64,000 bases of DNA from Bispira polyomma (taxonomy: Eukaryota): assembly GCA_965649765.1 (NCBI GenBank), contig OZ287750.1, forward strand, positions 67,580,001 through 67,644,000, in the 5' to 3' direction. Positions 3,631 to 43,300 of this stretch are shown piece by piece. The translations under genes and the position numbers were made by a program. The notes below the pieces were generated by a model. That model was not told the DNA's origin. It saw nothing but the letters and a program-made list of their open reading frames with translations, and did no database searches. Each line of letters starts with the position of its first letter. Positions within the stretch are counted from its first letter, which is position 1.

Positions 3631-4191
3631 GAATCACCCAAACAGTCATTCCTGTGGATCCTAGAGAGGGAGCCACCAGTGTACTTTTATGGCACTATCC
3701 ACGTCCCATTTACCCGGGTGTGGAAGCACATTCCTCACAATGTGAAGCAGGCATTCCTGCGGGCAGACCAAGTCTACTTTGAATTAGATCTCCTGGACAC
3801 TAAGACAGTCTCTGCCCTGGCCTCTTGTCAGTTACTACCTCAAGGTCAAGTGCTCTCTAACATTCTACCTAAGGAGATGTACCGCCGACTGAGGCGCCAC
3901 CTAGACTATGTCAGGGACATGATGCCAGGTTGGATGACTACAGAGCAGCAGAGTCGTGGACTGTACGCAGACTATCTGTTCCAAGCCATCACAAGTAACT
4001 GGGAGCGTATGCGTCCCATTTGGATCATGCTGATGGTGAGCTCTCTGACAGAGAGTGAGATTCAGGCCCGAGGTGTGCCTGTCTTAGACTTGTACCTGGC
4101 ACAAGAAGCTCAGAGACTGGGTAAACAGACAGGAGCTGTGGAGCAGGTAGAGGAACAGTGTGTCCCACTCAACGGACTCAATATTTCACAG
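3631..4191 (+). CDS. TRABD2: TIKI metalloprotease exon A (first exon in window; TraB/PrgY-like catalytic domain, N-terminal part)
   Basis: Pyrimidine tract + AG (tttgttttctgtttttag) ends at 3630; donor cag|gtaagc after 4191; 561 nt, phase 0/0. Translates [31 protein letters not shown]...VYFELDL...[24 protein letters not shown]...[12 protein letters not shown]...[20 protein letters not shown], which are hallmark TIKI motifs. Confidence 0.96.
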
Positions 4192-4351
4192 GTAAGCCTG
4201 TCCCACGCAATGGAATCAATACTTCACAGATAAGCCTGTCCCACTCAATAGACTCAATACTTCACAGGTAAGCCTGTCCCAAGCAATGGACTCAATGCAC
4301 TCAATGCACTCAACAGACTCAATACTTCACAGGTAAGTGTGTCCCACTCAA
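4161..4351 (+). repeat. 38-nt tandem array spanning the exon A donor (~4.5 copies)
   Basis: Unit tgtcccactcaacggactcaatatttcacag|gtaagcc starts at 4161, 4199, 4237 and 4275. Confidence 0.95.
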
Positions 4352-5819
4352 ATGTACACATTTGGATTGTCAGGATTTTTGTTCACTTTGCACTTCTGAT
4401 CTTTGTCATGTGTTTTTACAATGTACCATAGACAATGTCTAATATCTCCATTTTTGCCTAACTTCTAGTTATGGCTTCCATTTATACAGAAATACAACTT
4501 AGTTACAAAAACATGTATATGCAGACATCTGTTAAAAGCCCCAAATGTGACAATTTTTGTGGTGTATTATATGGACTTAGTGTTATTTATGTCACAAAAG
4601 AAACTTGTTTGTGCAAATATGGTTTCTTCTTGATGTTATGAAATTATTACAAGGATATAGGAAAACAAGTGGATCAAAGAGGGGGTGAGGTTTCTGTGTA
4701 AGAGCTCCTGTACATGTATTTGTGGTGATATGTTTAAGGACACCACTACATCTGCTGACTTGGTTTATTCCTTCTCTAGTTCAGGTTATGTGACACAATA
4801 TCCACCACAGGTTGTTGTCACAATGGCCAACTCTTCAAAGAATGTTCACTCTTGACTTCTCCATTTCTGTGTTTGAGTTGTTGTCTAATGAAATCTGATC
4901 TGAGTGAAAGCACTAGTGCCTTGTTTGTACTTCAGAAGTGATGTTCTGAGAGTGTGTAGATCAGAGTAAGAATCATGGTAACAATACTGACTATGTCTGC
5001 AGTGTAGTACACTTTAGTCAGCAAGTGTCAGGGACCACCAGTGGCGTTGGCTTTAAAGGAGTTTTCTTAATAAAGTATAGAGCTCATAGTCATTGAATTC
5101 AAATGTTGTCTGAAGAGATAACTCAGACGCATCACTGTCTTTGAAGTCTTCATTCAAACTCTAACACTTATTGACTCATTTTTTAAAAAGTCTAATGAAA
5201 GTTTTTGACGTCAGTTTTTGGCACCGTAGTCAATGAATAAATATGATACGGATTATGGTTTTAATTGATCAAATAGGCAGATATTTTTCTTCTGATAAGT
5301 GTTAAACTATACACAAATTTGATACATATAAATATGTGTGAAAACTGTACAGAATGTTAATTCACACTTATCTTGATGTGGTGAAGTGGTTCTAAAAGAA
5401 AACAATAGACAGGGTATTGTGGAGGTCTAAAACTGGAAGTGGCATTGTTAAGGTTTAATCTGGAGCTGTCAAGGCTTTCTGAGGAGACAGAGTCGACTTG
5501 TGATCATGTGAGAGCTTTCAGTTCACTGTATAGACTTCCTTAGTGAGAACAGACCCCCATTGTACACAATGTCATTGTTATGTAGGCAGAGTTTTTCTAA
5601 AGGGCTTATTCTCTACCTTGTCACCTTTCGAGTTTACCTCTGTGTGGTAGGAATTGGTCATCTGGTGTAACAGCTAATATCCCCCCTGTGAAATGTCTCA
5701 CCCTCTCCCTACAGGGAGTATATTCTGTAAATAGATTTGTAAGATTACCTCAACAAAGCATTCAGCATTGTGTTAGAGGCACCAAATTCCAGGGGCACCA
5801 TGTCCTAGCTATAAATCCC

Positions 5820-6113
5820 AAGTATACCCCACTAAGATGACTTCCTAGGAGTTTATCACACAGTCTGTTAGGGTAACCTAGCCATACATTCTCCTGAATG
5901 TCGAGTATACCACACTGAGATGACTTCCTAGGAGTTTATCACACAGTCTGTTAGGGTAACCTAGCCATACATTCTCCTGAATGTCAAGTATACCCCACTA
6001 AGATGACTTCCTAGAAGTTTATCACACAGTCTGTTAGGGTAACCTAGCCATACATTGTCCTGAATGTCAAGTATACCCCACTAAGATGACTTCCTAGGAG
6101 TTTTTCACACAGT
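5820..6113. repeat. 83-nt minisatellite, ~3.5 copies
   Basis: agtataccccactaagatgacttcctagg... recurs at 5821, 5904, 5987 and 6070. Confidence 0.95.
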
Positions 6114-7217
6114 AGACAGTCTGCCTAAGACTTTTGTTGGGAAGCTTTCTCCCTTTAAACTAATGCTGAAACCTTGGTTTAAACTGTAGTGACAATGACC
6201 ATCATGTATTTCATTATATATGTTAAAACGTTTACAGTAGGCCTGATGACTGTTAAACAGACCATCAGCCAGAGTGGCAAAGAAGTTTTAAAGATCTCTT
6301 GGATTACAAAACATGCTTCTCATGCAGCTTTTTAACCAATTCTGGGAACTGTCAAAGTCTTATAGAACTCAACCAATTCAAACAATACCCAATTCTGTTA
6401 TGACATGAATCTCTGCATTATATATTGGCAATGTCTATTGAAGAATCAGAAAGAGGTCCTGCTTTTTCTGATCCTTCAGAATGTATTATCTTGTCTAACT
6501 TATATACATAAATACAGTAAAACCTTTATTATCTCGACATCTTGGGGAACAAACTTTTGTTTGGATAACAGAACGGAATGTTCATATACATGTAATAGAA
6601 ATTGCATTTCTCTATAAAACGTTAAAAAATATAATTTGCGGAGTGTACAAATGTGTAAATATTTAGATATTCTAAGTTTGGATAATAGACTTACATATAC
6701 ATGAAATAAGTAAATTAGTTTTAAGGCACATTTTGTTCAGGAACTTTTAACAGTGGACTTTTAAACTATATTTAAGTATAACGTTTTTGTCCAATAAGAA
6801 GCAGTTTGTATGCTATGTTTTTGTGTTATTTCTTCACTCTTTGAGAACTGAGAAGATTGTTATCACAGTTTTCAAGTGCTAGCTAAAATTAAACCTTGGC
6901 TTTCAGATAATTCAGGCTAAAAATGAAAGTCTATTTGACTGACCCTGTGTGACTTGTTTAGTATGACCTCTTTATTGACAGAGTCTGGTCATTGAGTGAC
7001 AGTCTAAACCTGTGTACCCAATAAGTGTAGCTTTGGTCATGTGTAAATATTATAAATGTACCAGCTCAAGTTCTTACACAGAGTGTGAACATCATAGATT
7101 GGACTGAAATCTCTGTAATCTGTTTAACTCTAAACAATGAAGACCCCAACAGACTGGTTGAAATTTGATTTGCCTGATTTCAATATCTTTTCAAGACACC
7201 TCATGAGAAAGTAGCCC

Positions 7218-7314
7218 GGGGCCGTATTCACGAAAGGACTTAGCCATGTCTTAGGCTTAAATCAGTATACTTTTGTGCTAGATTTAAGCCTAAGACATGG
7301 CTAAGTCATTTCGT
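7218..7314. mobile_element. Short hairpin derivative of the GGGGCCGTATTC MITE family
   Basis: acgaaaggacttagccatgtcttaggcttaaatc is near-perfectly complementary to gatttaagcctaagacatggctaagtcatttcgt; the left end matches the element at 27376. Confidence 0.8.
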
Positions 7315-7909
7315 CCTATGTGGCAGTGGGAGGTGGGGGAAACCTTAAAAAGTGTTCCAAGCAAAGGTAGAATTTTAATGAAAATGTGTTTAAGAAAAAT
7401 AATTCTTTGTATATGTCACAGGGCAAATTAAAATCCAGGTAGGTTTTAAATCCGCCTAAGGTTAATTAAATTTCTAATCCCGCCTAGACAAAATCAAAAT
7501 TTTAATCTCGCCTGGGCGGATTTTACCTCGGTGGTTTAGAGATAATAATCCCGCCTCCCATCTCTGCAGTTGTGGGTGTTTGAATCTCTACCCACAGGGG
7601 CATGTGGTAAAGTTAACAGTGAACTAGTGTTTACAGTTGAGGAATCTTGACCAACTAGACTATTCTGCTTTCATTCCGGCATGTTATGATACACTTATTG
7701 ACAGCATCCTTAAATATAAACTTAATTCTGAATCTTAAAGAAGAAGTTGTGGGTCACTATCAAACAATAGGAATGTAAACTGTGGAATGGGTTGTTAGAA
7801 TTTTTACAGGGTAGTTGATAAAAATGTAACATAAGTTTTGCTCTCTAAGTTAAGTGTACAGCCACACTTTTAGATAACATCTCTGAAACAATAGAAAGTA
7901 GGATTGGTA

Positions 7910-8084
7910 CAGTTAAACCCCTTTAAGTAGAACTCTGTCAAGTCATTTTCCTTGTTATATAGAAACAAATTTGAAGTCCAATGCAGACCTTATTATTTCA
8001 AACCTACCCTGTTAAGTGGAAATCCTGCTTAAGTAGAGGTATTATTCTGGGTCCCTTGAGGTTTGACTTAAAGGGGTTCAACTG
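7910..8084. mobile_element. Tc1/mariner-pogo-type MITE with TA target duplication; related copies at ~8620-8790, ~15225-15419, ~22145-22552, ~30138-30322, ~59010-59177
   Basis: ta|cagttaaacccctttaagt ... acttaaaggggttcaactg|ta (19-bp TIR, 1 mismatch); internal gttaagtggaaatcctg and cccttgaggtttga recur in other copies. Confidence 0.85.
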
Positions 8085-8870
8085 TATATTAAAATCAAGC
8101 TGTTAGGGGATCCTATGTTATTACATGATATCACACACTGTGACCAGAAGACATGAGTCTGTATTGATCATTTAAACTCACAACAATCTCAAAATGAGAC
8201 CTTTGTTAAATAGCTCCTAGTCCACAGGTCTCTGACTAGTTAGTTTGTAGAGACAAGCTGTCTTACCAATGGCGCCCAGTGCTACCATTGTTAAAGCCAA
8301 TTTTCTAGGCCAGACACCATCTTTAAGGAGTTATAAGATTAAAGTGTCACACAAAGTGGTTTCCCTAATGGAATTTTTGCTGCTACATTAAATTAGCAGC
8401 ACAAGGAAGTGTTGTGGTTTGCATCACCTCATGTGAAGCAGCTTTTGTTGTCAAAATGTGTTATATTTCAAAAAAAATGTCAAAATACTCCATATGTAAG
8501 TTATATGGAGCCACAAAATTAACAGGCAACTATTTACCTTTTATGAAAGCAAGCACGGTGACCTGAGGTTAAAACATTTTTTCCAATACATGCTGTAGAT
8601 TGTACTGTGTCATAAAATACAGTTGAGCCCCTTTAAGCTGAACCCGAAGGGACCATTCACAATGTCTATACTTAAGCAGGATTTCCACTTTACAGGATAA
8701 ATTTTAAAAGAAAATGCCTTTGTGGGAATAAAGATGTTTCTCCACATCGAAGGAAAATTAACTTGATAGAGTTCTACTCAAAGGGGTTTGTTTTGACACT
8801 GTTTTCAGCCTTATGATTTCATTTCCACAGGTTAGTGTTTTGTAAAGCTTACCTTCAGTTGCTATATAAA

Positions 8871-9711: not shown

Positions 9712-11683
9712 AAAGCCTACCCGTAAAAATCTGTAGTGTCTGAAAATATTTGTAATAGTAACTGTATGGAAAGCATATTGATTATAGCACATGCATGTAT
9801 ATATAGATATTGGGGTTTTGTAATAATACAATAAACACTCTTTTATCTGAAATACTGCTGGAAGAGCAAGATTTTGTTTTTTAGTTAAGGTTCATGAAAT
9901 AAAAGAGGCATTTTAGTATAGACAAAAGGAAAACATAAATTTGAGAGAATGAAAAGGAGTTTATAAATCAAATATTTAAATACTAGAAGTTTAGATAATA
10001 GGTATTTCTACTGTATGTAAGAGGGAGAGCCTAGGATAGTCGGTTCTACAGCTGACAATTCTTGTATATCATTATTAGCACAGTGGCCCCTTTGTGCAGA
10101 AAAGGTACAAACATCTACAACAGAATTTGTACACTGCCATGTAGATCACAGAGGACTATCTAAATTAAACCTTACATCTGCAATATGTAGGATCACTTTA
10201 TTTTAATACAAACCGAGTTTGCTTTAAGCTATTTGTGCAAATGTATAGCATATTTAGCTGTTATAATTCTTGGTAGAGATGAAAGCTTGTTTCCTGCAAT
10301 CTGTGCTAAAGGAAGCAGAAAATCATTTCCCCTGACTAGCTTTTAAAACACAAACACAGCAGGGAAATAGCGGGAGAATGGTAAAGTGATAACAACATGG
10401 CACTTGAGTACCAACTTCTGAGCAATTCCTCTAAATAAACTGATCTCCAGTTATCAGCCAGCAATCAGCAACCTCCATCATAGCAATAATCTCTCTGATG
10501 GAATTTTAAACACTGAGTAATAAATGCGGAGGTTAGGCACTGTACACTTTGATGTCTCTCCCACCCTCATAGTAAATTACAGCAAATTGCCGGAAAAAAT
10601 GCTGGAGCAATAACCATAGGCACTAAATACAAACACTGGTAAATAGTGAAAGTTGGTGGAAGTTAAACCTTCAGTGCCACAGTTTTTAGTACCAGCAATA
10701 GTATTTTTGAGAGAATCCTATAAACTGCTTAGTACATACTTCATGTGTGACATGACCCCATTGTTAGTACAATCTGACTGGTGTAACCTGTATCACCCTG
10801 TACGTCATCTCACCAATGACAAACAAGGTTTTCTTTTTTCGAGATAATCTAGATATCTGAAATTGGTAGCAAGAAGAAGGATGCTACAATGCCATTTTTG
10901 AGTTAGGTTTATGAACAGGTTCTGAAAGGATCCAGAAAAGGTGTAAAAAATACACAAAAAATGCAGCATCCTGTTGTTTCTTATGTACCTAGTAGACCTA
11001 CATGTGAAATGCTAACATAAAGTTCTCCATGTGGCAAACATTCTTCATTAACAATAACAGAAAAAACTCTGTATTTATTAGTATCTTATGTTACACGTTG
11101 TACAAATACTGTATTTATTCCTATTATAAAAAAGAATCCCACACAAATAAAGTCCCAGCAGTTTGTGTTTATGTAACAATAGATGGGCTATTGAATTGTA
11201 ACTTGTTCAGGTTAAACTAAAACTACATTGTGTTCATCCACAGCAAACTAAACATCTTAGTGCCTGAATTCCAAGGATGACCTACAGGATTAGGGAACTT
11301 TTAATTAGCCTTGTTAGCTGCAGAGATTCCAATAAAATATTGATGTTTATTTTATCTTCTTTATTACTACATGGGTTAGCAGTGGCAGCTAGTGCAGGTA
11401 TTTATTTTGGCCTTAGGGTTACACTCCAGCTGTTTAAAGTCTCACCAGTTTGAGCAAACCATATTATTAAGGAAATAATTGTATGTGGTAATAGTTGGTA
11501 TGCCAACCACATAAAAGTAGGTGACTGTAATCAGGACATGACAAAGATTAATGAAAAGTTTGGGAAACTAGAATCTATTACAGTTTTAGATACCTTATAC
11601 AGATTTCCCAATTTGTATGTATAATCCATGTAATCCAATTACATTTGACTAGCTTTGTGTGGAAGATTAAACCTATTAGAATG

Positions 11684-11890
11684 TTACCTTTGCCATGAAG
11701 GTTATGTTTTTGTCTGTTGGTGTGTTTGTTCCCTGCATTACATAAGAATAGGATTGATATAAAATTTGATGGAGGGATGGGACATGGGGAAAAGAAGAAT
11801 CCATTAAATTATAGAGCCATTTTTTTTGTGAGGTTTTGGCACTGTGTCATCTTGGCGAGGTCATGTGGCCTATTAAGTGGCCCTAGAGTT
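11684..11890 (+). mobile_element. Short degenerate Helentron-type non-autonomous element (HINE/DINE-like)
   Basis: 5' ttacctttgccatgaaggttatg, microsatellite-like tgtctgtt, 3' cttggcgaggt complementary to the 5' motif, then a short hairpin and agtt. Confidence 0.55.
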
Positions 11891-13315
11891 TCAAATGAGG
11901 CTTTTAGTTCATGCAAGTCTCTTTAAATGACTTATTTTTGCCTCTCCACAATTGGTGCAGATAATCCTGAGATTCTCTCTGTACCTATATACATAGCTTA
12001 CTCACTTCAAATCAGCGCCTACAAGCAAACTAAGGAGTCATATGAGTATAAAGTATGAGTAGCCCAATACTACTGATTAAACAAGGCTGATAAAGCTGTT
12101 ATCATGTGCAGCACAGGTTTTACCATTCATTTGGTATTGATGAAAAGCTTGGTTCTGGTTAAGGGTCAGTGCAGTATCAAGGTGTGTGCTTTGTAGGCTG
12201 CAAGAGAAATTGGGTAAATCTCTGGCCACTTTAACCCTTCTCAATGATGGGTGAATGGAAGCTGGAAATCTCTATACTCATTCTGTGTGTAAAATGATTG
12301 TCTGTGTTCTATAGTTTTTAGGAAAGACAAGAATAAAAGTTTGAATCCATCACAAGATAACATGTGTAACATCCATATATTTGAGAATGTTAAAGAGGCT
12401 CTATAACACCATAAGTAAACCTTCAAACAAGAGTTTATATGATTAAGAATGCCAAGTATGTTTAGTTCAATCGGATCTAGAACTGGCAAACATGTACCTA
12501 GCTGTGGCTTGTTCTTAGTGATAAGATACAACAAGACTTGAAGAGCAAAAAAACATGTTTCTGGTTTTTTCACTTTGTTAAGTCATTGAGGATCTAACAA
12601 AATACAACAACTTGGTGAAAGCATGAAAAGCTACTCAGTCAAGATGTACTATGGACCTAGCCTTTCTGCAGGCTACAAAGGTGGTAAAATACTTCATGGG
12701 CAGTGTGTGTTGGTCCTTAGTGCTATCACTTTAATAAGACTGATGCAAGTTTGATGTCACATATAGTTACCTGTTGGAAACATTCAGATATTTAGAATTC
12801 TATCAAAATGCTGTGACTAACTGATCAATAGAAGTCCATTCTGTATCCAGTAGTAGTGGGCAAGGCTAGTGTTGTCTATATGATTATGTGTAGATGAATG
12901 GCTCACTAATTTGCCTAGCTACTGGTTCTTACCCTTAAGATCACAAGTTTTATATTCACCCACACAGTTGGGAAGCTGCTGTGTTGATTAATATTCCATA
13001 TTACTTGACACATACAAAAGGCTTAGATAATACATGTATATGAAAGAAAGTAGGACCATTATTTGGTTGCTATCATCAGTTTTAAAAGTGATGGTGATCA
13101 CAAATGTGTTATTTCTGTGTACTGAAGGAAATGGCTTCAAAAACAGATAACATGAGGAAGTCTTTAGGAGAGGAGTGATTATCTGACAGGACTTTAGATG
13201 TATTAGTTGTCTGGAAAGCTGAGATTAGGAGTCTGGGTCACTCACATACAGCTGTCTATTAAGTCTTCAGTTTGCAGAAGTTCAAACCCACAGGTCACAA
13301 ACACCTGTAAAACAA

Positions 13316-13545
13316 TCTAAACATTGAACATGGTACCAAATACCGTACAACCTCTGTTATATAAACATTGAACATGGTAACAAATACAGTACAACCTTTG
13401 TTATCTAAACATTGAACATGGTAACAAATACAGTACAACCTCTGTTATCTAAACATTGAACATGGTAACAAATACAGTACAACCTCTGTTATCTGAACAT
13501 TGAACATGGTAACAAATACAGTACAACCTCTGTTATCTGAACATT
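13316..13545. repeat. 44-nt minisatellite (~5 copies) that includes a pogo-type MITE terminus
   Basis: Unit aacattgaacatggtaacaaatacagtacaacctctgttatcta; period 44 (13321, 13365). Confidence 0.92.
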
Positions 13546-16504
13546 TTGGAAAAGCAATAATATGTTTGGATGACAAGAGGTTTCAAACTTTACAAGAGGA
13601 AGGAGAATGTATGACATTGGGAAAAAAATGAGAGCATAAGGTTAAATAATCATAAAACAGAGGTTTGGATAATAGAATGCCCATCTTTATTTAAGAATCT
13701 GCATATTGAGGCACTTACAAAATGGAGTCGCATGGTCATTGATTGGAAACTAGTTTAAATCTCTGACTATTACATTGTACATATATACTTGAAGCTTCTA
13801 GCAGTCTTCAGACTTCAGAAAATATCTACAGCAGCCTGATGGATCTTCTCAGGTACAATACTAATGTACCTGAACTTAAAACCCCTTTGGAACATTACTA
13901 GTTTTCCATGATGCTATAATAAATTCTCCCATGTATGCCATACCAGTAGAATAGCAACGATGTATCTGTCATTTTTTTTGTATTATTTAATACTTTTAAA
14001 GAAGTACTACAATCCCTTTTATTTTCTTTAGGACATTTCTAATAAACTAATTTACACATTTGAGATTTTAAACATTGTATGTCAACTGACAATCATTTGT
14101 AGATGTTGGCATCTGTTGGATATATGTAATTCAAATCCAAAATAACTTTAAGGAGAATTTATCTTGTACAGAGAAACTTGACTCTGCATCAGAAATGTGT
14201 AAATTGGACATACAGGGGTGTTATTGTCCTGATAAAAGGCTTAGTCAAAACACTTGGCTAGTTCAATGTTTAATTTTTAACATCAACAAAAACAATGTGG
14301 GCAGTTAAAGTAGAAGTGTGGTTTGTGTGAGCTTGTGGTGATGAATGTGTGTGTGGATTATCTCTGTATTTGCTGCCCTCTTGAACACATCAGAAGGCAG
14401 TAAGAGCCCTCTGTGGACCACCAGATGATGATCCTTTACCTGACTTCACACCACAACTAGTAATTGGTAAACCTGCTGGAAGGATAACCCCATTTTACTG
14501 GACGCAAGGGGAGTGGGACCGACTTCAGTACAAGTACAATTTCCATTGCTATAACAGTGAAATGAAGAAGACAACTTGTCTTTGTTATTGTCAAGTTAAG
14601 CTGTATGAATGTAAACAGAAAGACACATCTTGCCCTAGCTTTAACCTTGTCTTTACAGTTACATGAACTTATTTCTAATGCTTTTTGTAAAATCACAAGT
14701 TTGAATTTCTTCATATATTGATCATTAGTTAAATATGACTGCATTTTCCACACTATCAGTGCTTTTTCAAGCTTTTCTGGGAACATAACAGCTACCTCAA
14801 ATGGCTTTATATGACGATACAATATAGTATTCTAAAGTTTAAATTCCAAAATAATCATACAGTTTTGCTTTATGGAATTTCATATGTAGCAAAAAACATG
14901 TTATCTAAAGTTAAACATACAAGTTTGACACATTACTTACTTTATGTGATGGGTGTTTAGATTACCATTAGCTTATGTAATTACACTGAAAACGATTAGT
15001 ATTGTATTTGTCTATTCGATAGATCATTCCACTTATTTTACACCTTATTTGTGCATATAGGTATGTAAATGGTATTAATAATGAGTGAAATATATAAAAG
15101 CTAAATATGGTGTTGTTACAAACCACTAATGTGTGGACTAATTTGTTAGTACCTCTAGACAATGAGCCCAACTGATATGTCAAACCCAATTTAGTAACGG
15201 TAACATATATCCTAAACCTTTTCTGTTAAACCCTTTTTAACTCAAACTGCAGTCAAACCCAAAAGTTAGGCCAATTTCTCTTTTTTGTGAAGAAAAATAT
15301 TTTACAGTCCCACAAAAGGCTTCTCTTTTAAAATCTACCTTGTTAAGTGGAAATCCTGATGAAGTAGACCTAGGCATTTATCCTGATCCCTTGAGGTTTG
15401 ACTTACAGCAGTTTAACTGTATATTATATTGTAGTAAATAAGTATGTGCTCTTCTGAAGGTGTGGGCTGAGAGAGTTTGCTGTAAACTTATGTGACTACC
15501 AGAATCATCTGAATCATCTAGGGTAGGAGGATTGTGAGGGAGGATGGTGAGCAGGTAAAGTCGCCCAGGGGCTGTCAGCTTTTTATAGTTTGTGTGTTGT
15601 TGTTTGAGAAGGTTTGAGCTCACTGTCCAACTTGTCTCTGGACTTTGTCTTGGTGTAGACAGAAACCAGTAACACAGCCAAGTAGTTGCTTTGTCACCAG
15701 TTGGTAATTATAGCCAGAGTGTACCACCCAAGTAGTACCTTTGTCGCCAGTTGGTAATTATAGCAGGTGGAAAGACACAGTTTGTAATCCATTCTGGACA
15801 ATGTCCCTGGAATTAAATTCACAACTAATATTTGCATAGAAAGATTTTAATGCAGTGTAAATTTCAAGAACATTCAGGAAATGTTTATGGCATTTGAGGC
15901 CTCCAATGCAGATAAAAAAATGAAAACCTGTTTAAAACTGTGTTGAAAACATCAACTTTGGGTCCCAAAGTATGAAACTGAATCTTAAAAATTATTGCGT
16001 ACATTGATTTATTAAATGTACAAATCAGTTCTTCAATCAACAACTATTTAAATCAGCTTACTAGGCCTTATTTCCATGGGTCTGTGTACATGTCATCTTC
16101 ATTTCCGAGACTACAGGTATTACAGACTTCCTGATTTTTTTACAGGTACCTTGGGGCCTAAGGATGAAAATTATTTATGGCGCCCATATGAGGCTATAAC
16201 CTGGGTCTACAAAAAATTTCAGAATTTTTCTTATCTTTCCTGTACTAACAGCATATTCTTTCACAATCTTCGAATGAAGGGATCAGGCCAAAAGTTTTGC
16301 AAACATATACCTTACCACATATATTTAAAAAAAATGTTTTTTTTTAAATTTATAAAATGTCAAATATCTCATTAACCATTGTGTTTGGACACATTGAATG
16401 TATTATGGTCATATATAAAACAGGGTCAGATGCACTGATTTGATCATATAGGAACACAGGGTCAGAGAATCTTATGCACTGATTTGATCTGTGATCTTAG
16501 TTTT

Positions 16505-24054: not shown

Positions 24055-24185
24055 GTATTGTTTGCTCTGAACCAGACGTTAGGACAACATGAAAGTGTGA
24101 GGTGGGGACTTAACAGTACACCTTACTCAACAGAGGAACTCATAACGCACTACAACTGCGGACAGTTGGATACAGTCCTCATAAG
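24055..24185 (+). CDS. TRABD2: TIKI exon B
   Basis: Acceptor tgtatattgtgtag|; translates [43 protein letters not shown] (conserved V.FALNQTL..HE and Y.TE.LI.HYNCG); donor aag|gtaata; 131 nt, phase 0/2. Not present in the ORF track. Confidence 0.94.
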
Positions 24186-24990
24186 GTAATAGGCTAGATG
24201 GTAAGAATACAGTCCTCATAAGATAATAGGCTGGATTGTAAGAATACAGTCCTTATAAAATAACAGCTAAATACAGTCCTTTTAAGGTAATAGGCTGGAT
24301 GGTAAGAATACAGTCCTCATGAGGTAATAGGCTGGATGGTAAGAATACAGTCCTCATGAGGTAATAGGCTGGATTGTAAGAATACAGTTCTTATAAAATA
24401 ACAGCTAAATACAGCCAGATACAGTCCTTATAAGGTAATAGGCTAGAGTGTGAGAATACAGTCAGATAAAGTCCTTATAAGGTTACAGGCTAAAGTGTGA
24501 GAATACAGTCAGTTACAGTCCTTATAAGGTAACAGGCTAGAGTGTGAGAATAGAATCAGATACAGTCCTGAGGCCGATGTGGCCTAGTGGTTAGCAAGCA
24601 TTGCGCTTCACAATCACTGGTCTCTTACCTCTGGGCGGCGTGAGTTCGAATCGCGTCGATGCCTATGTGGGAAAGGTGGTACTTCCTTACTGTGGGCCGC
24701 TGGTTTCTCTGCATAACCTTGACCGACTGTATGCAGTGTTTCCTCCAGCGTTTCCAACTACCCGTCCCAATATAACCTACTAAAAGGTACTAGAGTGGAC
24801 GTTAAATATCCAAATTCAAATTCAGATACAGTCCTTATAAGGTAACAGGCTAGAGTGTGAGAATACAGTCAGATACATTTCTTATAAGGTAACAGGCTAG
24901 ATTGTGGGAATACAACCAGATAGAAACTTTAAAAGGTAATAGGCTGGATTGTGAATACCACCAGATACAGTCCTTATAAGGTAGATTATG
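24170..24990 (+). repeat. 37/47-nt tandem array spanning the exon B donor, interrupted by a SINE
   Basis: Unit atacagtcctcataag|gtaataggctggatggtaaga, roughly a dozen diverged copies. Confidence 0.93.
24570..24821 (+). mobile_element. Full-length tRNA-derived SINE (Meta-domain-like) with 14-bp TSD
   Basis: A box tggcctagtgg, B box gagttcgaatc, tail (caaatt)2, TSD tcagatacagtcct at 24556-24569 and 24822-24835; second copy at 55422. Confidence 0.88.
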
Positions 24991-26966
24991 AATACAGAAG
25001 CCATAGATATATTTCCAAGTCTTTTTTACATTTAGCACCATCCAAAAAGTGAGATAACAATGGACTAGAATAACACTCTTTATCTTCTAACCATACCCGG
25101 TAACATGCAACATTATAGCTTTAGTCTCTGAAAAAACTGGTCACAAATTCTTAATTCCATTAAATCACCCAGACATGTTTCCACTAAATATAAAACGTGC
25201 TATGGCTAAGGATTCAAAGAAGATGTTTGTTTTGGCCAGAATTTATGTCCTGTCAATCATGGTATACAAGTGATCTATAATGTGCTTTATAGGTGTATAA
25301 GACTAAAAGTGTGTGGATTTTCTTAAGTAAGAAATCTGTGTAATAGTTGAGTCTGGAGATATATGTAGTTGATTACTACAACAGACGCCTTGCCAGACCA
25401 ATTTGTTCTGGAAATAAGGTTAAGTGTACATGAGTTATTGCAGAGGAAATGGGTGTAAGCAAACAGCAATATATCGTTAACATGTAGATCTGGTAGTTTT
25501 ACTGCAGGAGATTGATGTAAATTACTTTCCATATTTATTGTAAGTTCTGATAATTAAACCCATGTTAGAAATGTGCAGAAAATGTACTCCTCATTAGTAT
25601 AATCAGCAGGCATGTGAAGTATAATTTTAAACTGCAATTTGTATTGAAATCTCTACTGAGCGCTGTATCTACTTACTTTCTGGACATAGAGGTTTTCCTT
25701 CCTGTCACATATCACTTGGTGTGATTGCAAGTTTAGAGTAAACTTAAAAGCATTTCCATTATTTTATTGTGTACAAATGGTTCTCTACTATTGTTTCTGA
25801 TCCTAATACCTGGTCAATAATCAAGGTTAAACATGGCCAATAACAGGTCTGCAAACTGGCATTAATAAAAGTTGTATAATTTGAAATAAATATTATATGC
25901 AATATCACTATTGCTCAAATTAAGGCTTTAGTAACGTAAACACACAAATAAGTAGCCTGTAAATTATACCTCAGTTACGAAAATATTTCAATCATAAGTA
26001 TCCACTATGGCAGCCTTAAAATATGTCTTTAGTGAACGTTTTAACCGTTTTTATATGCAAAGACCATTTGAAACTTTAAATTTGAAATCTATTGTGAAAC
26101 GTCATATTTGTAAACAATACTCGCAAATAGCCCCTTCTATTGTGACACAGTATGAGTATTGATCCAGCATATATAAAGATATGATATAGGCTACTCAACT
26201 TTAGAAATCGTGTATATTATTTTGTATGATTTATTTTTTTTAAATATGTTTTCATATATTTTGGAAAACATAAATGTAACTCAATGTTGAATTTGTAATA
26301 TTTTAACTTTGTGTATTTCGGAAAAATTAACAGGGTTTATTGAAGTTTATTGAAAAATTAATTCATACAAAATAATGCTGAAGTTTTTGGTTATCTTGTA
26401 GTATGCAATATTGTAGTATTGATTAATTTCTTTATGTGTAATGTGTCACGTTTGTGAGGGGTGTACCAAGACAAATATTCATATTTTTCTTACAATGTTA
26501 CACTTGTTGTATGTAATCTTGTTTTCATAAATTGTTAAAACTCTTAAAATCTAACTTAAATTGTTATATAATTCTTCCTTTATGAGTTTCACTCATCATA
26601 CAGTAAAACTTGTGTTTAAAAATTCATTGAGGCCTTCATTACAAAAATAATGTTTCTTGACAGTTTTTTTTTATAGCGTGGTTTAGCAGCTATGGTTTTT
26701 GTGTTTATGTTGTTAAAGCCTCAAGCAGACAATGGTGAGATGAGAGACATAACTCCATCATACCATACACCATACTATTGTAGACCAACCTGAACAACAA
26801 AGACACACTTTAATCAACTAGGTCACATATTTTTTTATCATGTAGGAGTGAATCCTTATGGTTTATTATTAGCTGGAGTTGTAGAAAACACAAACTGACA
26901 ATTTACCAAAGTCTTTTTTTTATATTTTTATTTTTTCTCCTCCAAAGTACAATTACAATACAAATT

Positions 26967-26969: not shown

Positions 26970-27004
<35 letters not shown>
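26970..27004. repeat. (TA)n microsatellite
   Basis: Uninterrupted ta run. Confidence 0.95.
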
Positions 27005-27005
<1 letters not shown>

Positions 27006-30383: not shown

Positions 30384-30583
30384 TCACAACACTGCTCAAG
30401 TGCCCAATCTAGTCGTTAACGTGAACCACACGTCACATGAGAGCAATCTAGTCATGGCTCGGGAAATCGACCACTACTTCCGTGAGGAGCTTATCTACAA
30501 ACGCAACCAGCGCATGGCCCACCGTATCAGCCGTCTACTCAGGAATCACCCAAATCAAAGCTTCTTCTTTGCCTTTGGAGCAG
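30384..30583 (+). CDS. TRABD2: TIKI exon C
   Basis: Acceptor tttcttttcgcag|; SHNTAQVPNLVVNVNHTSHESNLVMAREIDHYFREELIYKRNQRMAHRISRLLRNHPNQSFFFAFGAG; donor cag|gtaaga; 200 nt, phase 2/1. Confidence 0.95.
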
Positions 30584-30780: not shown

Positions 30781-31810
30781 GATAAATAGATAGATAGATA
30801 AATTTTTTATTATACTGACACAATGCTTTACAAATATATTTTACAAAATACAATGGTTAAAAAAACATAGCACTCAGCCAAAAAGGCTTATAAGTCAGCT
30901 TTACAATCAAATACAAATTTATACGTGTGTGAATACCTTAACAAATCAACATGATCAAAAGTAGCAGTAGGAGTACCACATTATCAGATTAAATACTTTT
31001 TGTAAACAATTTAGATTTTCTTAATTCCCAATTACCGCATAAAAATTTAGCAAATTTGTTCAGATTTAGATTACTAAAAGACATCACCTTATTCATTATT
31101 CTTTGGAAATTAGATGAGAGAAATCAACATTAACATGTTCCCTTATATAGTCAAAGAAATTTTTGCTGTTATAATTATACAATGGGCAATCAATAAGAAA
31201 GTATTGTTTGTCTTCCACAATTCCCAAATCGCAGAATGTACATGTTCTACTTGATAACTCTTTTTTCTTGTATCTACCCATCTTCACTGCTAGCTTAAGT
31301 GTTCCTGATCTTAACTGGACAATGAGAGACCTTCAACATCTTTTAAGATTCTGTGACACCTACTGTTTCGTTTCCAGGTGACTTTATTATTTTGAATATA
31401 TTCTTAATTTTGGTTTGGTTACTAAACTTTCTTGCCAGTCACAATTATTCAAAACAGTTTTTTTCGCATACTCCAAGTCAACAGCTTTTCCTAAAAATAA
31501 ATTTTCCTGCAGATTCAATTCAGTCAATATTTTTTCTATGTCGCCACACCAACTGTTATTAGAGATATTCTGTAAATCAAATTCAAAAATGTTGTATGTC
31601 AGTCTCTCATTGTCCGTTTTAACTGGTCTATTATAGAATTTAATGACATTAAGATACATGTGTATCTTCTATATTTAGGTTGTAGCCATCCCATGTCCCC
31701 ATGTAAAAAATCAAGTGCAGTTTTGAGATGAACACCTAGAAAGTGGCGAATTGCTCTGTTTTGGATTTTATCCTTATATTTTGTTTTAATATATAACTGT
31801 CTCCACACAC
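30781..31810 (-). mobile_element. 5'-truncated, frameshifted non-LTR retrotransposon (ORF2 C-terminus; RTE-X/CR1-group-like)
   Basis: Minus-strand fragments KIQNRAIRHFLGVH...LHGDMGW, KPKLRIY and MGRY...RTCTFCDLGIVEDKQYFLIDCPLY (LINE C-terminal Cys motif); 3' tail aataaa + (tcta)n. Confidence 0.85.
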
Positions 31811-32339
31811 ACAAACACACTGTACTATTTACGATTGCGATAGTTTTTGCTCCTGGAACGGAAATTTTTGCATTGTACAGAAAAATTGCCCAGAGGTGGT
31901 GTCATAAGCAATAATAAATCTATTAAAAGTCTTGAAAGACAATACCAAATTGTACAGAAAAATTGCCCAGAAGTGGTGTCATAAGCAATAATAAATCTAT
32001 TAAAAGTTTTCAAAGCCAATACTAAATTACAATATTTATCGCAAATAGTACAATCGTACATCGCCAGATGGTACTTATGTAGACGTACACTCAAGAACCT
32101 TTGGGATGTTGATATTCCTCAAACCTCTGTCCATGTTTATAACATATCAAACCTTAAGCTAGTCTAAAATGTAACTAATAAGGGATTTAGATGTTTATTT
32201 ATTGTAGTATATTTTTGAAAACTTTAAAAAGTACTGTGTAAGTGAGCGTTTCCTTGCAGGCAACTTTCTGAGGCGACCAGCCGACGTCAATTCCGTTATG
32301 AAGTGTTTAACAATTCTATCAGTTTCATTGAGTTATTAC

Positions 32340-34664: not shown

Positions 34665-35220
34665 TTATGTTCATTCAGTGTGTCTACAGTTATAAGTTTG
34701 ACAGGTGGTTACTTCTGATTAGAGCCTTAGTCCAGGTATAAGTTTGACAGGTGGTTACCTCTGATTAGAGCCTTAGTCCAGGTATAAGTTTGACAGGTGA
34801 TTACTTCTGATTAGAGCCTTAGTCCAGGTAAAAGACTAATGTTCATTCAGTGTGTCTACAGTAGGTATAAGTTTGACAGGTGGTTACTTCTGATTAGAGC
34901 CTTAGTCCAGGTATAAGTTTGACAGGTGATTACTTCTGATTAGAGCCTTAGTCCAGGTAAAAGACTAATGTTCATTCAGTGTGTCTACAGTAGGTATAAG
35001 TTTGACAGGTGGTTACTTCTGATTAGAGCCTTTGTCCAGGTATAAGTTTGACAGGTGATTACTTCTGATTAGAGCCTTAGTCCAGGTAAAAGACTAATGT
35101 TCATTCAGTGTGTCTACAGTAGGCATAAGTTTGACAGGTGATTACTTTTGATTAGAGCCTTAGTCCAGGTATAAGACTAATGTTCATTCAGTGTGTCTAC
35201 AGTAGGGATGAGTTTGACAC
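34665..35220. repeat. Higher-order minisatellite (46-nt units plus 37-nt spacers)
   Basis: Unit gtataagtttgacaggtggttacttctgattagagccttagtccag; spacer gtaaaagactaatgttcattcagtgtgtctacagtag. Confidence 0.93.
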
Positions 35221-36427: not shown

Positions 36428-37185
36428 AGACTGGTGGTTGAGGGAGGGGTACACTCCTTTGATCTTATCCAACTCTTCAGACCGGTGGTTGAGGGAGGGG
36501 TAGACTCCTTTGATCTTATCCAACTCTTCAGACCGGTGGTTGAGGGAGGGGTAGACTCCTTTGATCTCATCCAACTCTTCAGACCGGTGGTTGAGGGAGG
36601 GGTAGACTCCTTTGATCTCATCCAACTCTTCAGACCGATGGTTGAGGGAGGGGTAGACCCCTTTGATCTTATCCAAATCTTCAGACCAATGGTTGAGGGA
36701 GGGGTACACTCCTTTGATCTTATCCAACTCTTCAGACCGGTGGTTGAGGGAGGGGTAGACCCCTTTGATCTTATCCAACTCTTCAGACCGGTGGTTGAGG
36801 GAGGGGTAGACCCCTTTGATCTCATCCAACTCTTCAGACCGGTGGTTGAGGGAGGAGTAGACCCCTTTGATCTCATCCAACTCTTCAGACCTGTGGTTGA
36901 GGGAGGGGTAGACCCCTTTGATCTCATCCAACTCTTCAGACCGGTGGTTGAGGGAGGGGTAGACCCGTTTGATCTCATCCAACTCTTCAGACCGGTGGTT
37001 GAGGGAGAGGTAGACTCTTTGATCTCATCCAACTCTTCAGACCGGTGTTGAGAGAGGGGTAGACCCCTTTGATCTCATCCAACTCTTCAGACCGGTGGTT
37101 GAGGGAGGGGTAGACCCCTTTGATATCATCCAACTCTTCAGACCAGTGGTTGAGGGAGGGTTAGACCCCTTTGATCTCATCCAAC
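36428..37185. repeat. 51-nt minisatellite, ~15 copies
   Basis: Unit ttcagaccggtggttgagggaggggtagacccctttgatctcatccaactc. Confidence 0.97.
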
Positions 37186-38110: not shown

Positions 38111-38732
38111 TGTCCTGGTCACACCTACACGTTCTAGAGCTACGTTTGTGTCACGTTGTGTTCATTTTGAAAATGTTTTGAAACGTAGTAGAAAGTGAGG
38201 ATCCCTGGTGCATTCGTTCCGTGACGTTGATTAACAGATGGTATCGTTCCAGAAACGTCTCTGTTTCATCTTCTGTGTGTAATGTTTCAAACTGTTTGAA
38301 ACACTACAGTCACAGCTTCCATTTCTCCCCGTTTCTCTGTTCGTCCCCGAACGTTTCCGGAAGTAGCATAGATGTATCAGTAAGTAGCTATATGTAGTAG
38401 TAGGTAGCGAGGAAGTCCCAGTAAGTAGTGAGATCGTCTCCGTTAGTCGAGAAAGTTTCACTAAGTAGCAGAAGGCAGCAGAATGCAGCCATAAGTAGCA
38501 GTACATTAGCTCTACGTAGTAGTAGGTAGTGATATCCTACCAGTAAAGGGTCTGTTTTTTGCCCCCTCTTCGTGTGTACAAGTACCAACATCATCACAGA
38601 AGGTCATGAAACGTCACAATCGACTGCACCTTTATGGAAATGACGTCACTTTGATACAAAACTGCCACATTTTCAGTGTATATCACTTAGGTACGTTGGG
38701 GGACGTTAGCACGTGTAGGTGTGACCAGGCCA
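38111..38732. mobile_element. Non-autonomous PIF/Harbinger element with TTA TSD, inserted in a (taagctggata)-type low-complexity tract (37990-38850)
   Basis: tta|tgtcctggtcacacctacacgt ... acgtgtaggtgtgaccaggcca|tta; 19-bp perfect TIR core. Confidence 0.88.
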
Positions 38733-39411
38733 TTATAAGCTGGATATAAGCTACATATTTAAGTGGGATATAAACTACATATATAAGTGGGATATATAAC
38801 TGGGATATATAAGTTAGATATAAGATGGATATAAGCTAGAAATATAAGCTGTAAATGTTTTCATCCTTTATCTTAACCTTACCTTTCTCAAAGAGAAGGA
38901 TTTCTTGTCCAGGACACTAATTTCCTGATTTTTAATGAATTGAGGTCTCATGCGGCATAGCATTTTTTAATGATTATTCCAATCCCAAACTATTTGCGGA
39001 GGTGTATCTGTGTCCGTCTCTTATCACAAGTAGCCTTCTGGATACAGTGTATATCATTGATATAAAGCTGTGATCATGTGAAGTAGATAGAGTATCTGTG
39101 ACCAGTAGAAGACATGGTAACTGTTACAATAAGAACTGTACAGAAAAGACTTCAGAAGCACTCCACACAAGTACTGATGCCTTTGAAGTGAACAAAGGGT
39201 GTCAGTTTTGTAACAGTTTACTAAAGGAGGCCATAACTTGCTACTTCAAGAGTCAGAAAAAAATATACAGGACTCTCACTGAAATACAGGATCTAGAAGA
39301 CCTTTAGACTTGATTTGTGTACCACAGAAGATTTTGATTTATGAGGATTTTGTTTTGGTGCAGACAATCAAACGATATATTACTATCACAGCCTTTCATT
39401 GTGGTCTCTAA

Positions 39412-39763
39412 TGGCCCATTCATATTGCAACCAATCTGGATATACGGATTCATTCGTTGGTTCTTATAAATTACCATAAACATTCACACTGCAACAAATC
39501 AGGATAATGATCTAGAAATTTGGTAGGGGTCAAAAGTTGCACAAATCTTTTTTCTAATTTTTTACACGAATTGTTGAGGGAGATAAATAAAAGCAAGTGG
39601 AAATGAAACAACATCATCTATAATATAAGAAAAAGAGTTATGTGTGCGCATGATTCGAGCAAATATTTTGGCTGTGTATGTACTGCAAGTGTATAAAATT
39701 CGGTTTTGTGTATATTGCCGAATTCTTTGATAAATACAGATTGGTTACAATGTGAATGGCCCA
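39412..39763. mobile_element. Harbinger-like MITE
   Basis: taa|tggcccattcatattgcaaccaatctg ... cagattggttacaatgtgaatggccca|tta (27-bp imperfect TIR, TWA flanks). Confidence 0.8.
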
Positions 39764-40202
39764 TTAAAGTTAAATAAGAAAATAGATATGTGGATCTACT
39801 TCTGATGGTTTTATTGTAGACAACACTCTGGTAGAATTACAGTATCACCTCTGTTATCCAAACTTCTATCATACAAATATTTAATTTTAAACTCAATTTT
39901 ACTGTTCGAAATGTATATTTTCCTATTGTTTCATCCTAAAATATTTCATTTATGTTATAAACCTTCTTTTATATAAACAAGGTGTTCCGATCATAAGTGG
40001 AAACCTGACCATTGTAGAGCAGTTTAAGGTGTTAACGCACCGTTCACATATTGACGGTATTGTAAGTGGTACTAGAAGGTACCGGAAGCTCTTCTAACTT
40101 GTCTTTCCTCCTATTACATATATAGAAAACAGATAAGAGTAGACTATGCTTGATTAATTAAAAGACACAGCAGCATGACAATATAGTTTGTTGTATTTCT
40201 AG

Positions 40203-40296
40203 GTCACTTTGTTGGTAATAACACAGTACTGGACATTCTAAAGGCCAAGAATTACCATGTGGTCAACACCCCAGTCAACCAGGAGGCTTACTTAGG
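40203..40296 (+). CDS. TRABD2: TIKI exon D (completes the GAGH metal-ligand motif)
   Basis: Acceptor ttgtatttctag|; GHFVGNNTVLDILKAKNYHVVNTPVNQEAYLG; donor agg|gtaggt; 94 nt, phase 1/2. Joins exon C to give FAFGAGHF. Confidence 0.92.
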
Positions 40297-40469
40297 GTAG
40301 GTGGCTAGTTTAACCAACACCTTAGTCAACCAGAAGGCTTACTTACGGTATGTGGCTAGTTTAACCAACACCTTAGTCAACCAGGAGGCTTACTTAGGGT
40401 ATGTGGCTAGTTTAACAAACACCCCAGTCAACCAGGAGGCTTACTTAGGGTTGGTAGTTGGTTTAACCA
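40264..40469 (+). repeat. 51-nt tandem array spanning the exon D donor (4 copies)
   Basis: Unit caacaccccagtcaaccaggaggcttacttagg|gtaggtggctagtttaac starts at 40264, 40315, 40366 and 40417. Confidence 0.95.
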
Positions 40470-40557
40470 GAAATTAGCCCCATTTGTGATCAAGTGTAAG
40501 ATTGCATATTTTGTACCAAATGACCTCTTATTACCAGAGCCAATTTTTACAGTTCGT

Positions 40558-41346
40558 ATGTACTGCATGACTACATTATACCACACTACCTCCTGTATTA
40601 CAGCTAAGTGTATAAGGTGAGCAGTCATCCTGTACTGCATTACTACATTATACCACACTACCTTCTATATTACAGCTCAGTGTATAAGGTGAGCAGTCAA
40701 CCTGTACTGTATGACTACATTATACCACACTACCTTCTATATTACAGCTCAGTGTATAAGGTGAGCAGTCATCCTGTACTGCATTACTACATTATACCAC
40801 ACTACCTTCTATATTACAGCTCAGTGTATAAGGTGAGCAGTCAACCTGTACTGCATTACTACATTATACCACACTACCTTCTATATTACAGCTCAGTGTA
40901 TAAGGTGAGCACTCATCCTGTACTGCATTACTACATTATACCACACTACCTTCTATATTACAGCTCAGTGTATAAGGTGAGCAGTCAGCCTGTACTGCAT
41001 GACTACATTATGCCACACTACCTCCTGTATTACAAATCCTCCTATAAGGTGAGCAGTCAGCCTGTACTGCATGACTACATTATACCACACTACCTACTGT
41101 ATTACAGATCTTTCTATAAGGTGAACAGCCAACCTGTACTGCATGACTACATTATACCACACTACCTTCTATATTACAGCTCAGTGTATAAGGTGAGCAG
41201 TCAGCCTGTACTATTATACCACACTACCTCCTGTATTACAGATCCTCCTATAAGGTGAGCAGTCAACCTGTACTGTATGTGTACATTATACCACACTACC
41301 TCCTGTATTACAGATCCTCCTATGAGGTGAGCAGTCAACCTGTACT
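40558..41346 (+). repeat. 72-nt tandem array spanning the exon E acceptor (~11 copies)
   Basis: Unit gtactgcatgactacattataccacactacctcctgtattacag|atcctcctataaggtgagcagtcaacct. Confidence 0.95.
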
Positions 41347-41442
41347 TTTGGCAGACCTGGGTACAGACACAGCCCCTGTCATCATTACCACAGGAAACTT
41401 TGACTACCTCAACCCATTCCAGCAAAAACGACCTCGTCACAG
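41314..41442 (+). CDS. TRABD2: TIKI exon E (variable linker)
   Basis: Acceptor cctcctgtattacag| (last copy of the 72-nt array); SSYEVSSQPVLLADLGTDTAPVIITTGNFDYLNPFQQKRPRH; strong donor cag|gtaaga; 129 nt, phase 2/2, in frame with D and F. The acceptor could instead be 41242. Confidence 0.75.
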
Positions 41443-41589
41443 GTAAGACTAAGGTGTTATAGCTCAGCTAAACCACCCCTCAATTGAACCCTTTTACTTC
41501 TAATGGCGCAGTATTCCCCTGTACTGAAGGAAGTTATTGTGTAACAGTAAGAGTCATTAAATAAAAAGATTCTAGATATTTCCAAATAG

Positions 41590-42199
41590 CCTAATGCTTA
41601 ACGAATCATGGTGAATAGGAAAATCGCCGGACTTGATTATTCTTCATTCCTCAATGCTCGCCAATCCTCGATATTAGGCTGCGATTATTTTGGAATTTTG
41701 AAACTGTCGCCATCATTCGCCGTCTTTTTTTCCCAACTATAATTTCGCCATGGTTGGTAGCACCTCCTTTGTAGTGGTAGCTTCCTTGTAGCCTCACTGT
41801 ACAGATATTTGCCTATATGTCGCCATGCCTCGTCTATCTTATCCATGTTCTTTGTTCACACATTCACAAATTTTGATGGCGAATGTCGGCAAACCTAAAA
41901 TTTGTCTGGTTGGTAGCACATTCTTCCTAGTTGGTAGCCAATTCTACTTAGTTGGTAGCCATTTCCTTGTGATGCTTCACCATTCTTCCCTATTCCCTTT
42001 CTCCATCCATTGAAGCCTATTATTCGACCCTTGTGGTGGAGTCAGGTCTATCATCGTAATTTACGCCAATATAAAAAAAACAAAAATAGACCCCGCCCCT
42101 TTTCACGGAGAATGATGAATAATCAAAGTTGTCTCTCATTCTCCAACATTCTCCATCATACTCGTAGCACCCTCTCCACTGTGTGACACAAGCATTAGG
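41590..42199. mobile_element. Probable non-autonomous TIR element
   Basis: cctaatgctt ... aagcattagg; CpG-rich interior with repeated tcgcc and ttggtagc motifs. Confidence 0.5.
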
Positions 42200-42474
42200 T
42201 TTATTTTTAATCTTAAATTACTGAAGGAAAATGAAGCAATGTGATTGGGGTGTCAACTGTTAGCTGACAGAAATCGTTATGAAAGCTTACTCTAATTAAT
42301 GAAAAAATCTTCGAAACCACTGTTAATATTGCTTTGTTTTACACATTGTTACAAGAACCAGAGGTGAAGAACATATTGCTGATAATAACCTGAAGTCTTT
42401 AATATTTGGTATATAATATTATGTTATTTTAATCTGTAGCCTTTATAATTTTCTTTGGTTTTCTATTCCAATAG

Positions 42475-42597
42475 ACACAGAAATAATAGGCGGCGGAATC
42501 GAAAGCGTGAACGTACTCGAAAAGAACAAACAACAAAGTACAGTGGACTGAAACGTCCTCGTTTTAATGATCTCTGGGTGAGACTGTACCCTACCAG
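42475..42597 (+). CDS. TRABD2: TIKI exon F (polybasic stretch + FNDLWVR motif)
   Basis: Acceptor ttttctattccaatag|; RHRNNRRRNRKRERTRKEQTTKYSGLKRPRFNDLWVRLYPT; FNDLWVR is recognisable from vertebrate TIKI C-terminal regions; donor cag|gttagt; 123 nt, phase 2/2. Confidence 0.9.
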
Positions 42598-43300
42598 GTT
42601 AGTGCTATAAACTAAAGACTGTACTCTACCAGGTTAGTGCTATAAACTAAAGACTTTACCCTATCAGGTTAGTGCTATAAACTAAAGACTGTACCCTACC
42701 AGGTTAGTGCTATAAAGTAAAGACTGTACTCTCCCAGGTTAGTACTACAAACTAAAGACTGTACCCCACCAGGTTAGTACTATAAACTAAAGACTGTACC
42801 CTCCCAGGTTATTGCTATAAACTAAAGACTGTACCCTACCAGGTTAGTGCTATAAACTAAAGACTGTACCCCACCAGGTTAGTGCTATAAACTAAAGACT
42901 GTACCCTATAAGGTTAGTGCTATAAACTAAAGACTGTACCCTATAAGGTTAGTTCTATAAACTAAAGACTGTACCCTCCCAGGTTATTGCTATAAACTAA
43001 AGACTGTACTCTACCAGGTTAGTGCTATAAACTAGAGACTGTACCCTATAAGGTTAGTGCTATAAACCAAAGACTGTACCCCACCAGGTTAGTACTATAA
43101 ACTAAAGACTGTACCCTCCCAGGTTATTGCTATAAACTAAAGAATGTACCCTACCAGGTTAGTACTATAAAACTAAAGACTGTACCCTACCAGGTTAGTG
43201 CTATAAACTAAAGCCTGTACCCCACCAGGTTAGTGCTATAAACTAAATACTGTACCCCACCAGGTTAGTGCTATAAACTAAAGACTGTACCCTACCAGGT
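42581..43300 (+). repeat. 35-nt tandem array spanning the exon F donor (21 copies of the exonic part)
   Basis: Unit agactgtaccctaccag|gttagtgctataaactaa; last copy starts at 43282 and continues cag|gtaagc. Confidence 0.97.

Follow-up and report, generated by a model that had tools for sequence, protein, structure and literature searches.

Mirage-like minisatellites at splice junctions of a predicted TIKI gene in the annelid Bispira polyomma

Results

The window analyzed here, a stretch of 64,000 nucleotides (nt) from the annelid Bispira polyomma (GenBank assembly GCA_965649765.1, contig OZ287750.1, positions 67,580,001 to 67,644,000 of the forward strand), lies on contig C3 of an assembly of 1.035 Gb in 75 contigs and contains no N. 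It carries a predicted gene for a TIKI/TRABD2 metalloprotease in which four donor sites and one predicted acceptor site each lie in a minisatellite whose unit is part exon and part intron. Seven coding exons (A to G) were predicted on the + strand, and every junction of this frame-consistent model is phase-compatible (exon end phases: A, 0; B, 2; C, 1; D, 2; E, 2; F, 2). Homology searches were run per exon. The Pfam family TraB/PrgY/gumN matched exons A and C and the named homologues of the gene were TIKI1/2, so that domain and best named matches both point to a TIKI/TRABD2 metalloprotease. Exon A (3631-4191) comprises 187 codons with the N-terminal part of the TraB domain and ends at the donor CAG/GTAAGC. 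Its orthologue in a relative (ERZ22147071, locus L077), 86% identical in amino acids (aa) and 78% in nucleotides, stops at the same acceptor and donor. At exon B (24055-24185) the homologues pass from ..SQ into VxFALNQ at the same point, and exon C (30384-30583), neither end of which lies in an array, has a homologous open frame with matching boundaries. Exon D (40203-40296) contains a GHFxGN motif that agrees with the homologues, and exon F (42475-42597) the conserved FNDLWV motif, which also matches them. Exon E (41314-41442) was predicted from frame and splice signals, without homology support, and could be skipped, as the join from D to F stays in frame. The last coding exon, G (43804-43990), encodes a hydrophobic C-terminus that presumably resembles a glycosylphosphatidylinositol signal. 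The signal-peptide exon of TIKI was not found in the window. A possible small upstream exon at 2369-2408 (cag acceptor, ATG, AAG/GTGAGT donor) is phase-compatible with exon A; it encodes no signal peptide and has no counterpart in the relative's locus.

Tandem Repeats Finder (TRF) reported five arrays at exon edges, all on the + strand, with periods of 38, 37 (compound with 47 and 27), 51, 72 and 35 nt. The array at donor A (4161-4344) has a 38-nt unit of 31 exon and 7 intron nt, and its four junction copies end at 4191 (the real donor), 4229 (dead, with AT), 4267 and 4332, GT being intact in two of the three intronic copies. The compound array at donor B (24170-24995) is built on a 37-nt unit (16 exon and 21 intron nt), with variants of 27 and 47 nt. 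Of its 13 junction copies 12 are intronic, and GT is intact in nine of these and changed to AT in the three dead ones. Within this array lies an element on the + strand (24570-24822) that resembles a short interspersed nuclear element (SINE), with a tRNA-like head judged by eye and a related element in the relative's locus. A 13-nt direct repeat borders it (24557-24569 and 24823-24835), but since the array unit contains this repeat too, a target-site duplication is not established by it. At donor D (40264-40469) a 51-nt unit (33 exon and 18 intron nt) occurs in four copies, with GT intact in all of them (3/3 intronic), and at donor F (42581-43300) a 35-nt unit (17 exon and 18 intron nt) forms 21 junction copies, likewise all with intact GT (20/20 intronic). 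The first copy of the F array has GTTAGT, and the terminal copy leads into another intron start, GTAAGC. In the F consensus the exon part is identical to the exon, and the intron part is unlike the terminal, probably older, intron start. The array at the acceptor of predicted exon E (40559-41346) has a 72-nt unit of 45 intron and 27 exon nt and 11 acceptor copies, one of them dead (AG intact in 9/10 intronic copies), and both of its ends carry the 6-nt direct repeat TGTACT. Between 40604 and 41340 each copy of the E unit consists of an acceptor followed 13 nt on by a donor-like AG/GTGAGC, an arrangement like a micro-exon cassette; the same donor-like sequence is also present within exon E, and one frame of the 72-nt unit is free of stops over 216 codons.

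On read-through past donors A, B, D and F, a stop codon comes ahead of every later intact donor, and a full-length protein therefore requires the first donor copy at these junctions. The original prediction that the real exon is always the outermost copy is thereby upheld at the four donors and is unproven at E, where the acceptor is ambiguous because the copy at 41242 opens an alternative in-frame exon that is 24 codons longer. The five units are unrelated to one another (shuffle p 0.05-0.86), in line with the independent origins proposed for them, and the F unit, the one of the five that was searched genome-wide, matched its own locus only. A single mobile element or satellite family was rejected as their source on these grounds. 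Copies within arrays diverge by 5-15%. The exon-A array was recovered with zero differences in single unitigs of three DNA runs, which derive from two samples and are probably the source of the assembly; no second haplotype was seen in these unitigs, a type of contig from which variants are dropped.

A junction test independent of TRF scored a position when a 16-nt window across it was repeated in tandem towards the intron but not towards the exon. Donors A, B, D and F (4/6) and acceptor E (1/7) were positive, and no other junction was. Among intron positions 1.8% show this event, which gives P = 1.4e-6 for at least five of 12 junctions. Both approaches therefore bore out the claim of part-exon, part-intron arrays at five TIKI junctions, and the placement at four of the six donors is not random. 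The estimate that such arrays make up about half of all arrays in the gene held for long arrays (period of at least 25 nt, at least three copies and at least 100 nt), at 5/10, and fell to 5/20 when all TRF arrays with a period of at least 15 nt were counted.

Junction arrays were surveyed outside TIKI in 39 exons of the myosin head and aldehyde dehydrogenase families, sampled by Pfam score and blind to repeats; junctions were placed by profile ends and splice score, and near-identical paralogues were counted once. Eleven donors passed the strict test (12 with L063, which has a short exon part), as did three acceptors, against a flank background of 1.9% of positions that includes the arrays of other exons (P = 1e-10 for donors and P = 0.04 for acceptors). 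The 95% interval of the donor rate is 17-48%, and donors exceeded acceptors (12 vs 3, p = 0.02). None of eight donors of long kinase exons, which are less certain calls, had an array, and with these included the pooled rate is about a quarter of the donors sampled. The comparison of TIKI (4/6) with the sample (12/39) gave p = 0.08. Junction arrays are not specific to TIKI, which is a dense example compatible with the sample rate, and the enrichment at junctions that had been set as a genome-wide check was found in this exon sample. A TIKI-specific or Wnt-regulation function was rejected, since 4/6 fits the rate in other genes.

When the positions at which arrays begin were counted, 12 starts fell in the last 80 exon nt compared with 2.3 expected (P = 6e-6, about fivefold), a density of 4.1-4.4 per kb, compared with an intron density of 0.7-0.9 per kb. 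Just beyond donors, within the first 100 intron nt, independent array starts were at background (2 in 4.1 kb). Acceptors were also at background by this measure (3 vs 2.9 expected), and enrichment at acceptors is doubtful. Array density was 0.52 per kb around multi-exon genes vs 0.09 around mostly intronless kinases, and no array event was found at the eight stop codons inspected, a small sample. Genome-wide, triple CAGGTAAG motifs at 15-45 nt spacing numbered 1,218 vs 192 for the reversed motif; these counts are of overlapping matches and not of arrays, the first 100 falling in about 20 unrelated arrays. A genome-wide count of an acceptor pattern (738 vs 141) was discarded because a dispersed 31-nt satellite carries the motif. 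This satellite, which begins TTTTACAGCCACC, occurs at many sites on C1 and C2.

The duplicated units span 26-127 nt. Their near breakpoint lies 6-73 nt inside the exon, and the far breakpoint lies 5 to about 90 nt beyond the junction at donors and no less than 16 nt beyond it at acceptors. Of the donor units, 6/16 have an intron part of at most 10 nt, whereas it measures at least 16 nt in 4/4 acceptor units, lengths that are expected if survivors must keep a working splice site. Direct repeats of 5-7 nt were found at the unit joins of loci L017, L019 and L022 and of the window arrays B, E and F. Unit length is a multiple of three in about a third of donor units, which is the chance expectation, and selection for frame-preserving units was rejected. 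Young two- and three-copy duplications were frequent at donors (L026, L030, L064, L074). One myosin gene segment occurs in triplicate on C8, C11 and C13 (L006, L007 and L008) with flanks 94-99% alike, and L006, L008 and L007 carry 12, 16 and 24 junction copies, respectively, of one 53-mer. Near-identical paralogues share copy variants, and since their copy numbers differ despite near-identical flanks, copy number must change fast in the germline. Transitions affected 14% of CpG bases in copies vs 8% of other C/G, the copies not being independent. The window-level test of GT conservation, in which copies are likewise not independent, did not reach significance, whether counted by cells (p = 0.08) or by arrays (p = 0.14). 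The unit of L017 is exon-like throughout, begins GTAACC and has GC at its terminal site; judging from these sequences, its first-place donor may have been made by the duplication itself, and L017 and F together suggest that arrays are able to rewrite a working donor. Donor scores of exons with and without arrays did not differ (4.9 vs 4.4, p = 0.49), and no difference was found in CpG; the ideas that arrays compensate weak donors or favor CpG-rich exons were rejected. In the relative, no array was present at the orthologous exon-A donor, the one junction compared.

Several non-coding blocks of the window are collinear with the relative's TIKI locus (1713-2097, 4797-4952, 5353-5553, 10290-10550, 11234-11444, 12112-12196, 12492-12648, 13145-13311 and 14136-14488). 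The block at 10290-10550 is 87.6% identical over 267 nt, above the coding exon A (78%), and the shared blocks are candidate enhancers. The relative's contig also has a multicopy insertion ahead of exon B, and a 143-nt satellite at 47876-48970 of the window is kin to a 169-nt satellite abundant in the relative. Long minisatellites away from modelled junctions were observed at 5819-6113, 13315-13545, 34687-35219, 36428-37185 and 45135-46412. The unit at 34687 holds a donor-like CAG/GTATAA and that at 36428 an acceptor-like CTCTTCAG, which makes unannotated exons possible at both. By eye, open-frame fragments at 56600-57030 and 60063-60740 resemble a PIF/Harbinger-type transposase, and fragments on the - strand in the intron between C and D (31099-31900) are like the end of a reverse transcriptase of a long interspersed nuclear element.

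Elsewhere in the genome, the mitochondrial contig C75 (L032) has the rRNA genes directly upstream of cox1 and on the opposite strand, and beyond cox2 a non-coding stretch that contains a long inverted repeat precedes an atp8-like start. Such an arrangement is unusual for annelids. In the mitochondrial code AGA/AGG specify Ser and AAA specifies Lys, on which grounds an amphioxus or echinoderm host was rejected. Dispersed near-identical intronless kinase frames of 411-418 aa (L038-L062) occur on at least 10 chromosomes and are perhaps carried by a transposon. The best named match of the intronless DYRK2 frame was from the annelid Ridgeia piscesae (79%), followed by a chiton (76%) and most other named molluscs (70-74%), which makes an annelid host very probable.

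Discussion

The original prediction knew of no named system for such arrays; one exists. In amphioxus, junction-spanning repeats in Adh3, the globins BflGb6 and BflGb9, troponin C and PGBD5 are called mirages, a term that these sources attribute to Canestro et al. 2002 (PMC3087553, PMC3902484). Donors and acceptors alike are affected there, splicing is apparently normal, the origin is called unclear, the copies are diverged (81-100% in BflGb6), and copy number is variable. The arrays described here share with them a unit that crosses the exon-intron boundary and reiterates the splice signal into the intron, gene-specific units, diverged copies and a copy number that varies, here between paralogues. 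They thus show the sequence features of mirages: minisatellite-sized units that span the boundary (at a predicted exon in the case of E), signals kept in many but not all copies, and locus specificity. They differ in occurring in an annelid instead of a cephalochordate; moreover, the cited papers describe single loci, and here frequency and enrichment were determined over a set of genes, with about a quarter of donors affected. Human equivalents are the variable number tandem repeats (VNTRs) at junctions of F7 intron 7 (37 nt), CBS intron 13, IFI6 (6-16) intron 2, LMNB2 (100 nt) and PDGF intron 4 (81 nt); in F7, splicing selects whichever of the identical 5' sites lies furthest upstream, even over stronger pseudo-sites (PMC1557585). 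As in those VNTRs, the first monomer lies across the donor and later monomers form 5' pseudo-sites, with similar unit size and copy number. The human examples are isolated cases, in contrast to four donors in one gene here, and use of the first site was established experimentally in F7, whereas in TIKI it is deduced from reading frames. A further parallel is intron gain by tandem duplication (the Rogers model, with internal tandem repeats at boundaries; PMC2812944), in which a duplicated AG/GT-like sequence also provides new splice signals; the present arrays lengthen existing introns instead, the only hint of such gain in the window being the in-frame alternative acceptor at 41242. A literature search that covered few subscription journals found no genome-wide account of mirages and no case from an annelid or mollusc. 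The structure is therefore already known, and what is added is its frequency in this genome.

We consider it probable, at roughly 0.6, that the arrays are mirage minisatellites that persist as a tolerated, neutral by-product of microhomology-guided duplications of exon tails. Short tandem duplications, whose excess in exon tails was observed, would begin in the last 10-75 nt of coding exons, often between 5-7-nt direct repeats, through replication slippage or errors of flap or gap repair. The trigger that we prefer is exon chromatin, that is, exons marked by nucleosomes and methylation in expressed gene bodies. Duplications within the exon would be purged, and those with a far end at least about 5 nt past the donor would, judging from the frames, spare the first donor. 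If the spliceosome takes the most upstream donor, as in the human F7 experiments, the mRNA would be unchanged and the duplication neutral. A duplication across an acceptor would have to preserve the pyrimidine tract and would place a rival AG upstream, and fewer should survive. Once formed, the arrays expand and contract as other minisatellites do, presumably by unequal exchange, and decay by point change and insertion. Purifying selection and use of the first 5' splice site account for the growth of arrays into introns only and for most of the donor-over-acceptor bias without any special mechanism. Since selection can do no more than remove events, a mutational or a longevity bias is required to explain why starts are five times more frequent in exon tails. 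Of the mutational process at exon ends that had been put forward, a bias is likely, and its coupling to splicing or transcription was not borne out.

Several observations weigh against the neutral by-product reading. The junctions sampled are few, represent two gene families and were placed by means of profile ends and splice scores. Array-bearing exons resembled the others in CpG, GC and length, and none of these properties points to a trigger. A number of joins show merely 1-2 nt of microhomology, and the silence of later donors is deduced here from reading frames. Finally, the GT of intronic copies changed in 3/206 bases vs about 11 expected from matched bases, although the copies are not independent and the window-level test was not significant; renewal from the selected first copy could be the reason for this conservation.

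The rival explanations account for parts of the same evidence. Splicing-coupled mutagenesis, in which polymerase pausing, R-loops or the 5'-exon splicing intermediate trigger duplication and the 5' splice site sets one breakpoint, would fit the strong donor bias, the far breakpoints at +5 to +10 in 6/16 donor units, the several arrays that stop only a few nt from their last donor copy, the abundance of arrays near multi-exon genes, which far exceeds that near the mostly intronless kinases, and, for what a small sample is worth, the lack of events at stop codons. Selection alone, however, already predicts the donor bias and the short intron parts, which vary from 5 to about 90 nt with microhomology accounting for several of the short ones, and the start of the next exon is absent from every window unit, for which reason spliced RNA was rejected as a template. 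We judge this mechanism unlikely. It is quite unlikely that longevity alone is at work, with duplications arising evenly and exon-anchored arrays, re-seeded from a selected master copy, outlasting free intronic ones. The F array, whose consensus agrees with the exon over its exon part and departs from the terminal intron start over its intron part, suggests renewal from the exon end; yet young duplications of two or three copies are likewise common at donors, and contraction to a single copy wipes out anchored and free arrays alike.

Retention for function, the other half of the original proposal, found little support. Rows of U1/U2AF sites could aid telescripting or the definition of exons, or could serve in regulated unproductive splicing; most copies have kept their GT, which is altered less often than matched bases, and some pseudo-sites are used in the human CBS and IFI6 arrays. 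Against this stand array-bearing donors that are not weaker, a twofold difference in copy number among near-identical paralogues, tolerance of dead copies and of a SINE insertion, and an orthologous donor without an array, as well as about 70% of donors that have none, and we give a functional role little credence. An assembly or annotation artefact is hardly conceivable. The read check did cover the exon-A array alone and used runs probably behind the assembly, but that array is identical in unitigs of three runs and two samples, copies are diverged (which the original prediction had held against a sequencing artefact), paralogues share copy variants, a SINE lies within one array, and the ends of exon A are confirmed by the orthologue.

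A more far-reaching reading may also be formulated. A germline process tied to exon recognition, coupled to either splicing or exon chromatin, would in this annelid lineage duplicate exon ends at a quarter of donors at least, would be weak or absent in the relative, and would be able to replace a working donor (F, L017). We regard it as doubtful. If it were true, the spliceosome or exon chromatin would be a direct local mutagen, and this genome would be suited to finding the cause of mirages.

Mirages are hereby extended to another phylum, with about a quarter of sampled donors affected, which by extrapolation would correspond to many thousands of independent events. In practice, junction arrays are liable to mislead gene prediction and the mapping of reads in this genome. 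They also make testable the exon-end bias of short duplications and its cause, the first-donor rule outside mammals, and the renewal of splice sites or seeding of introns.

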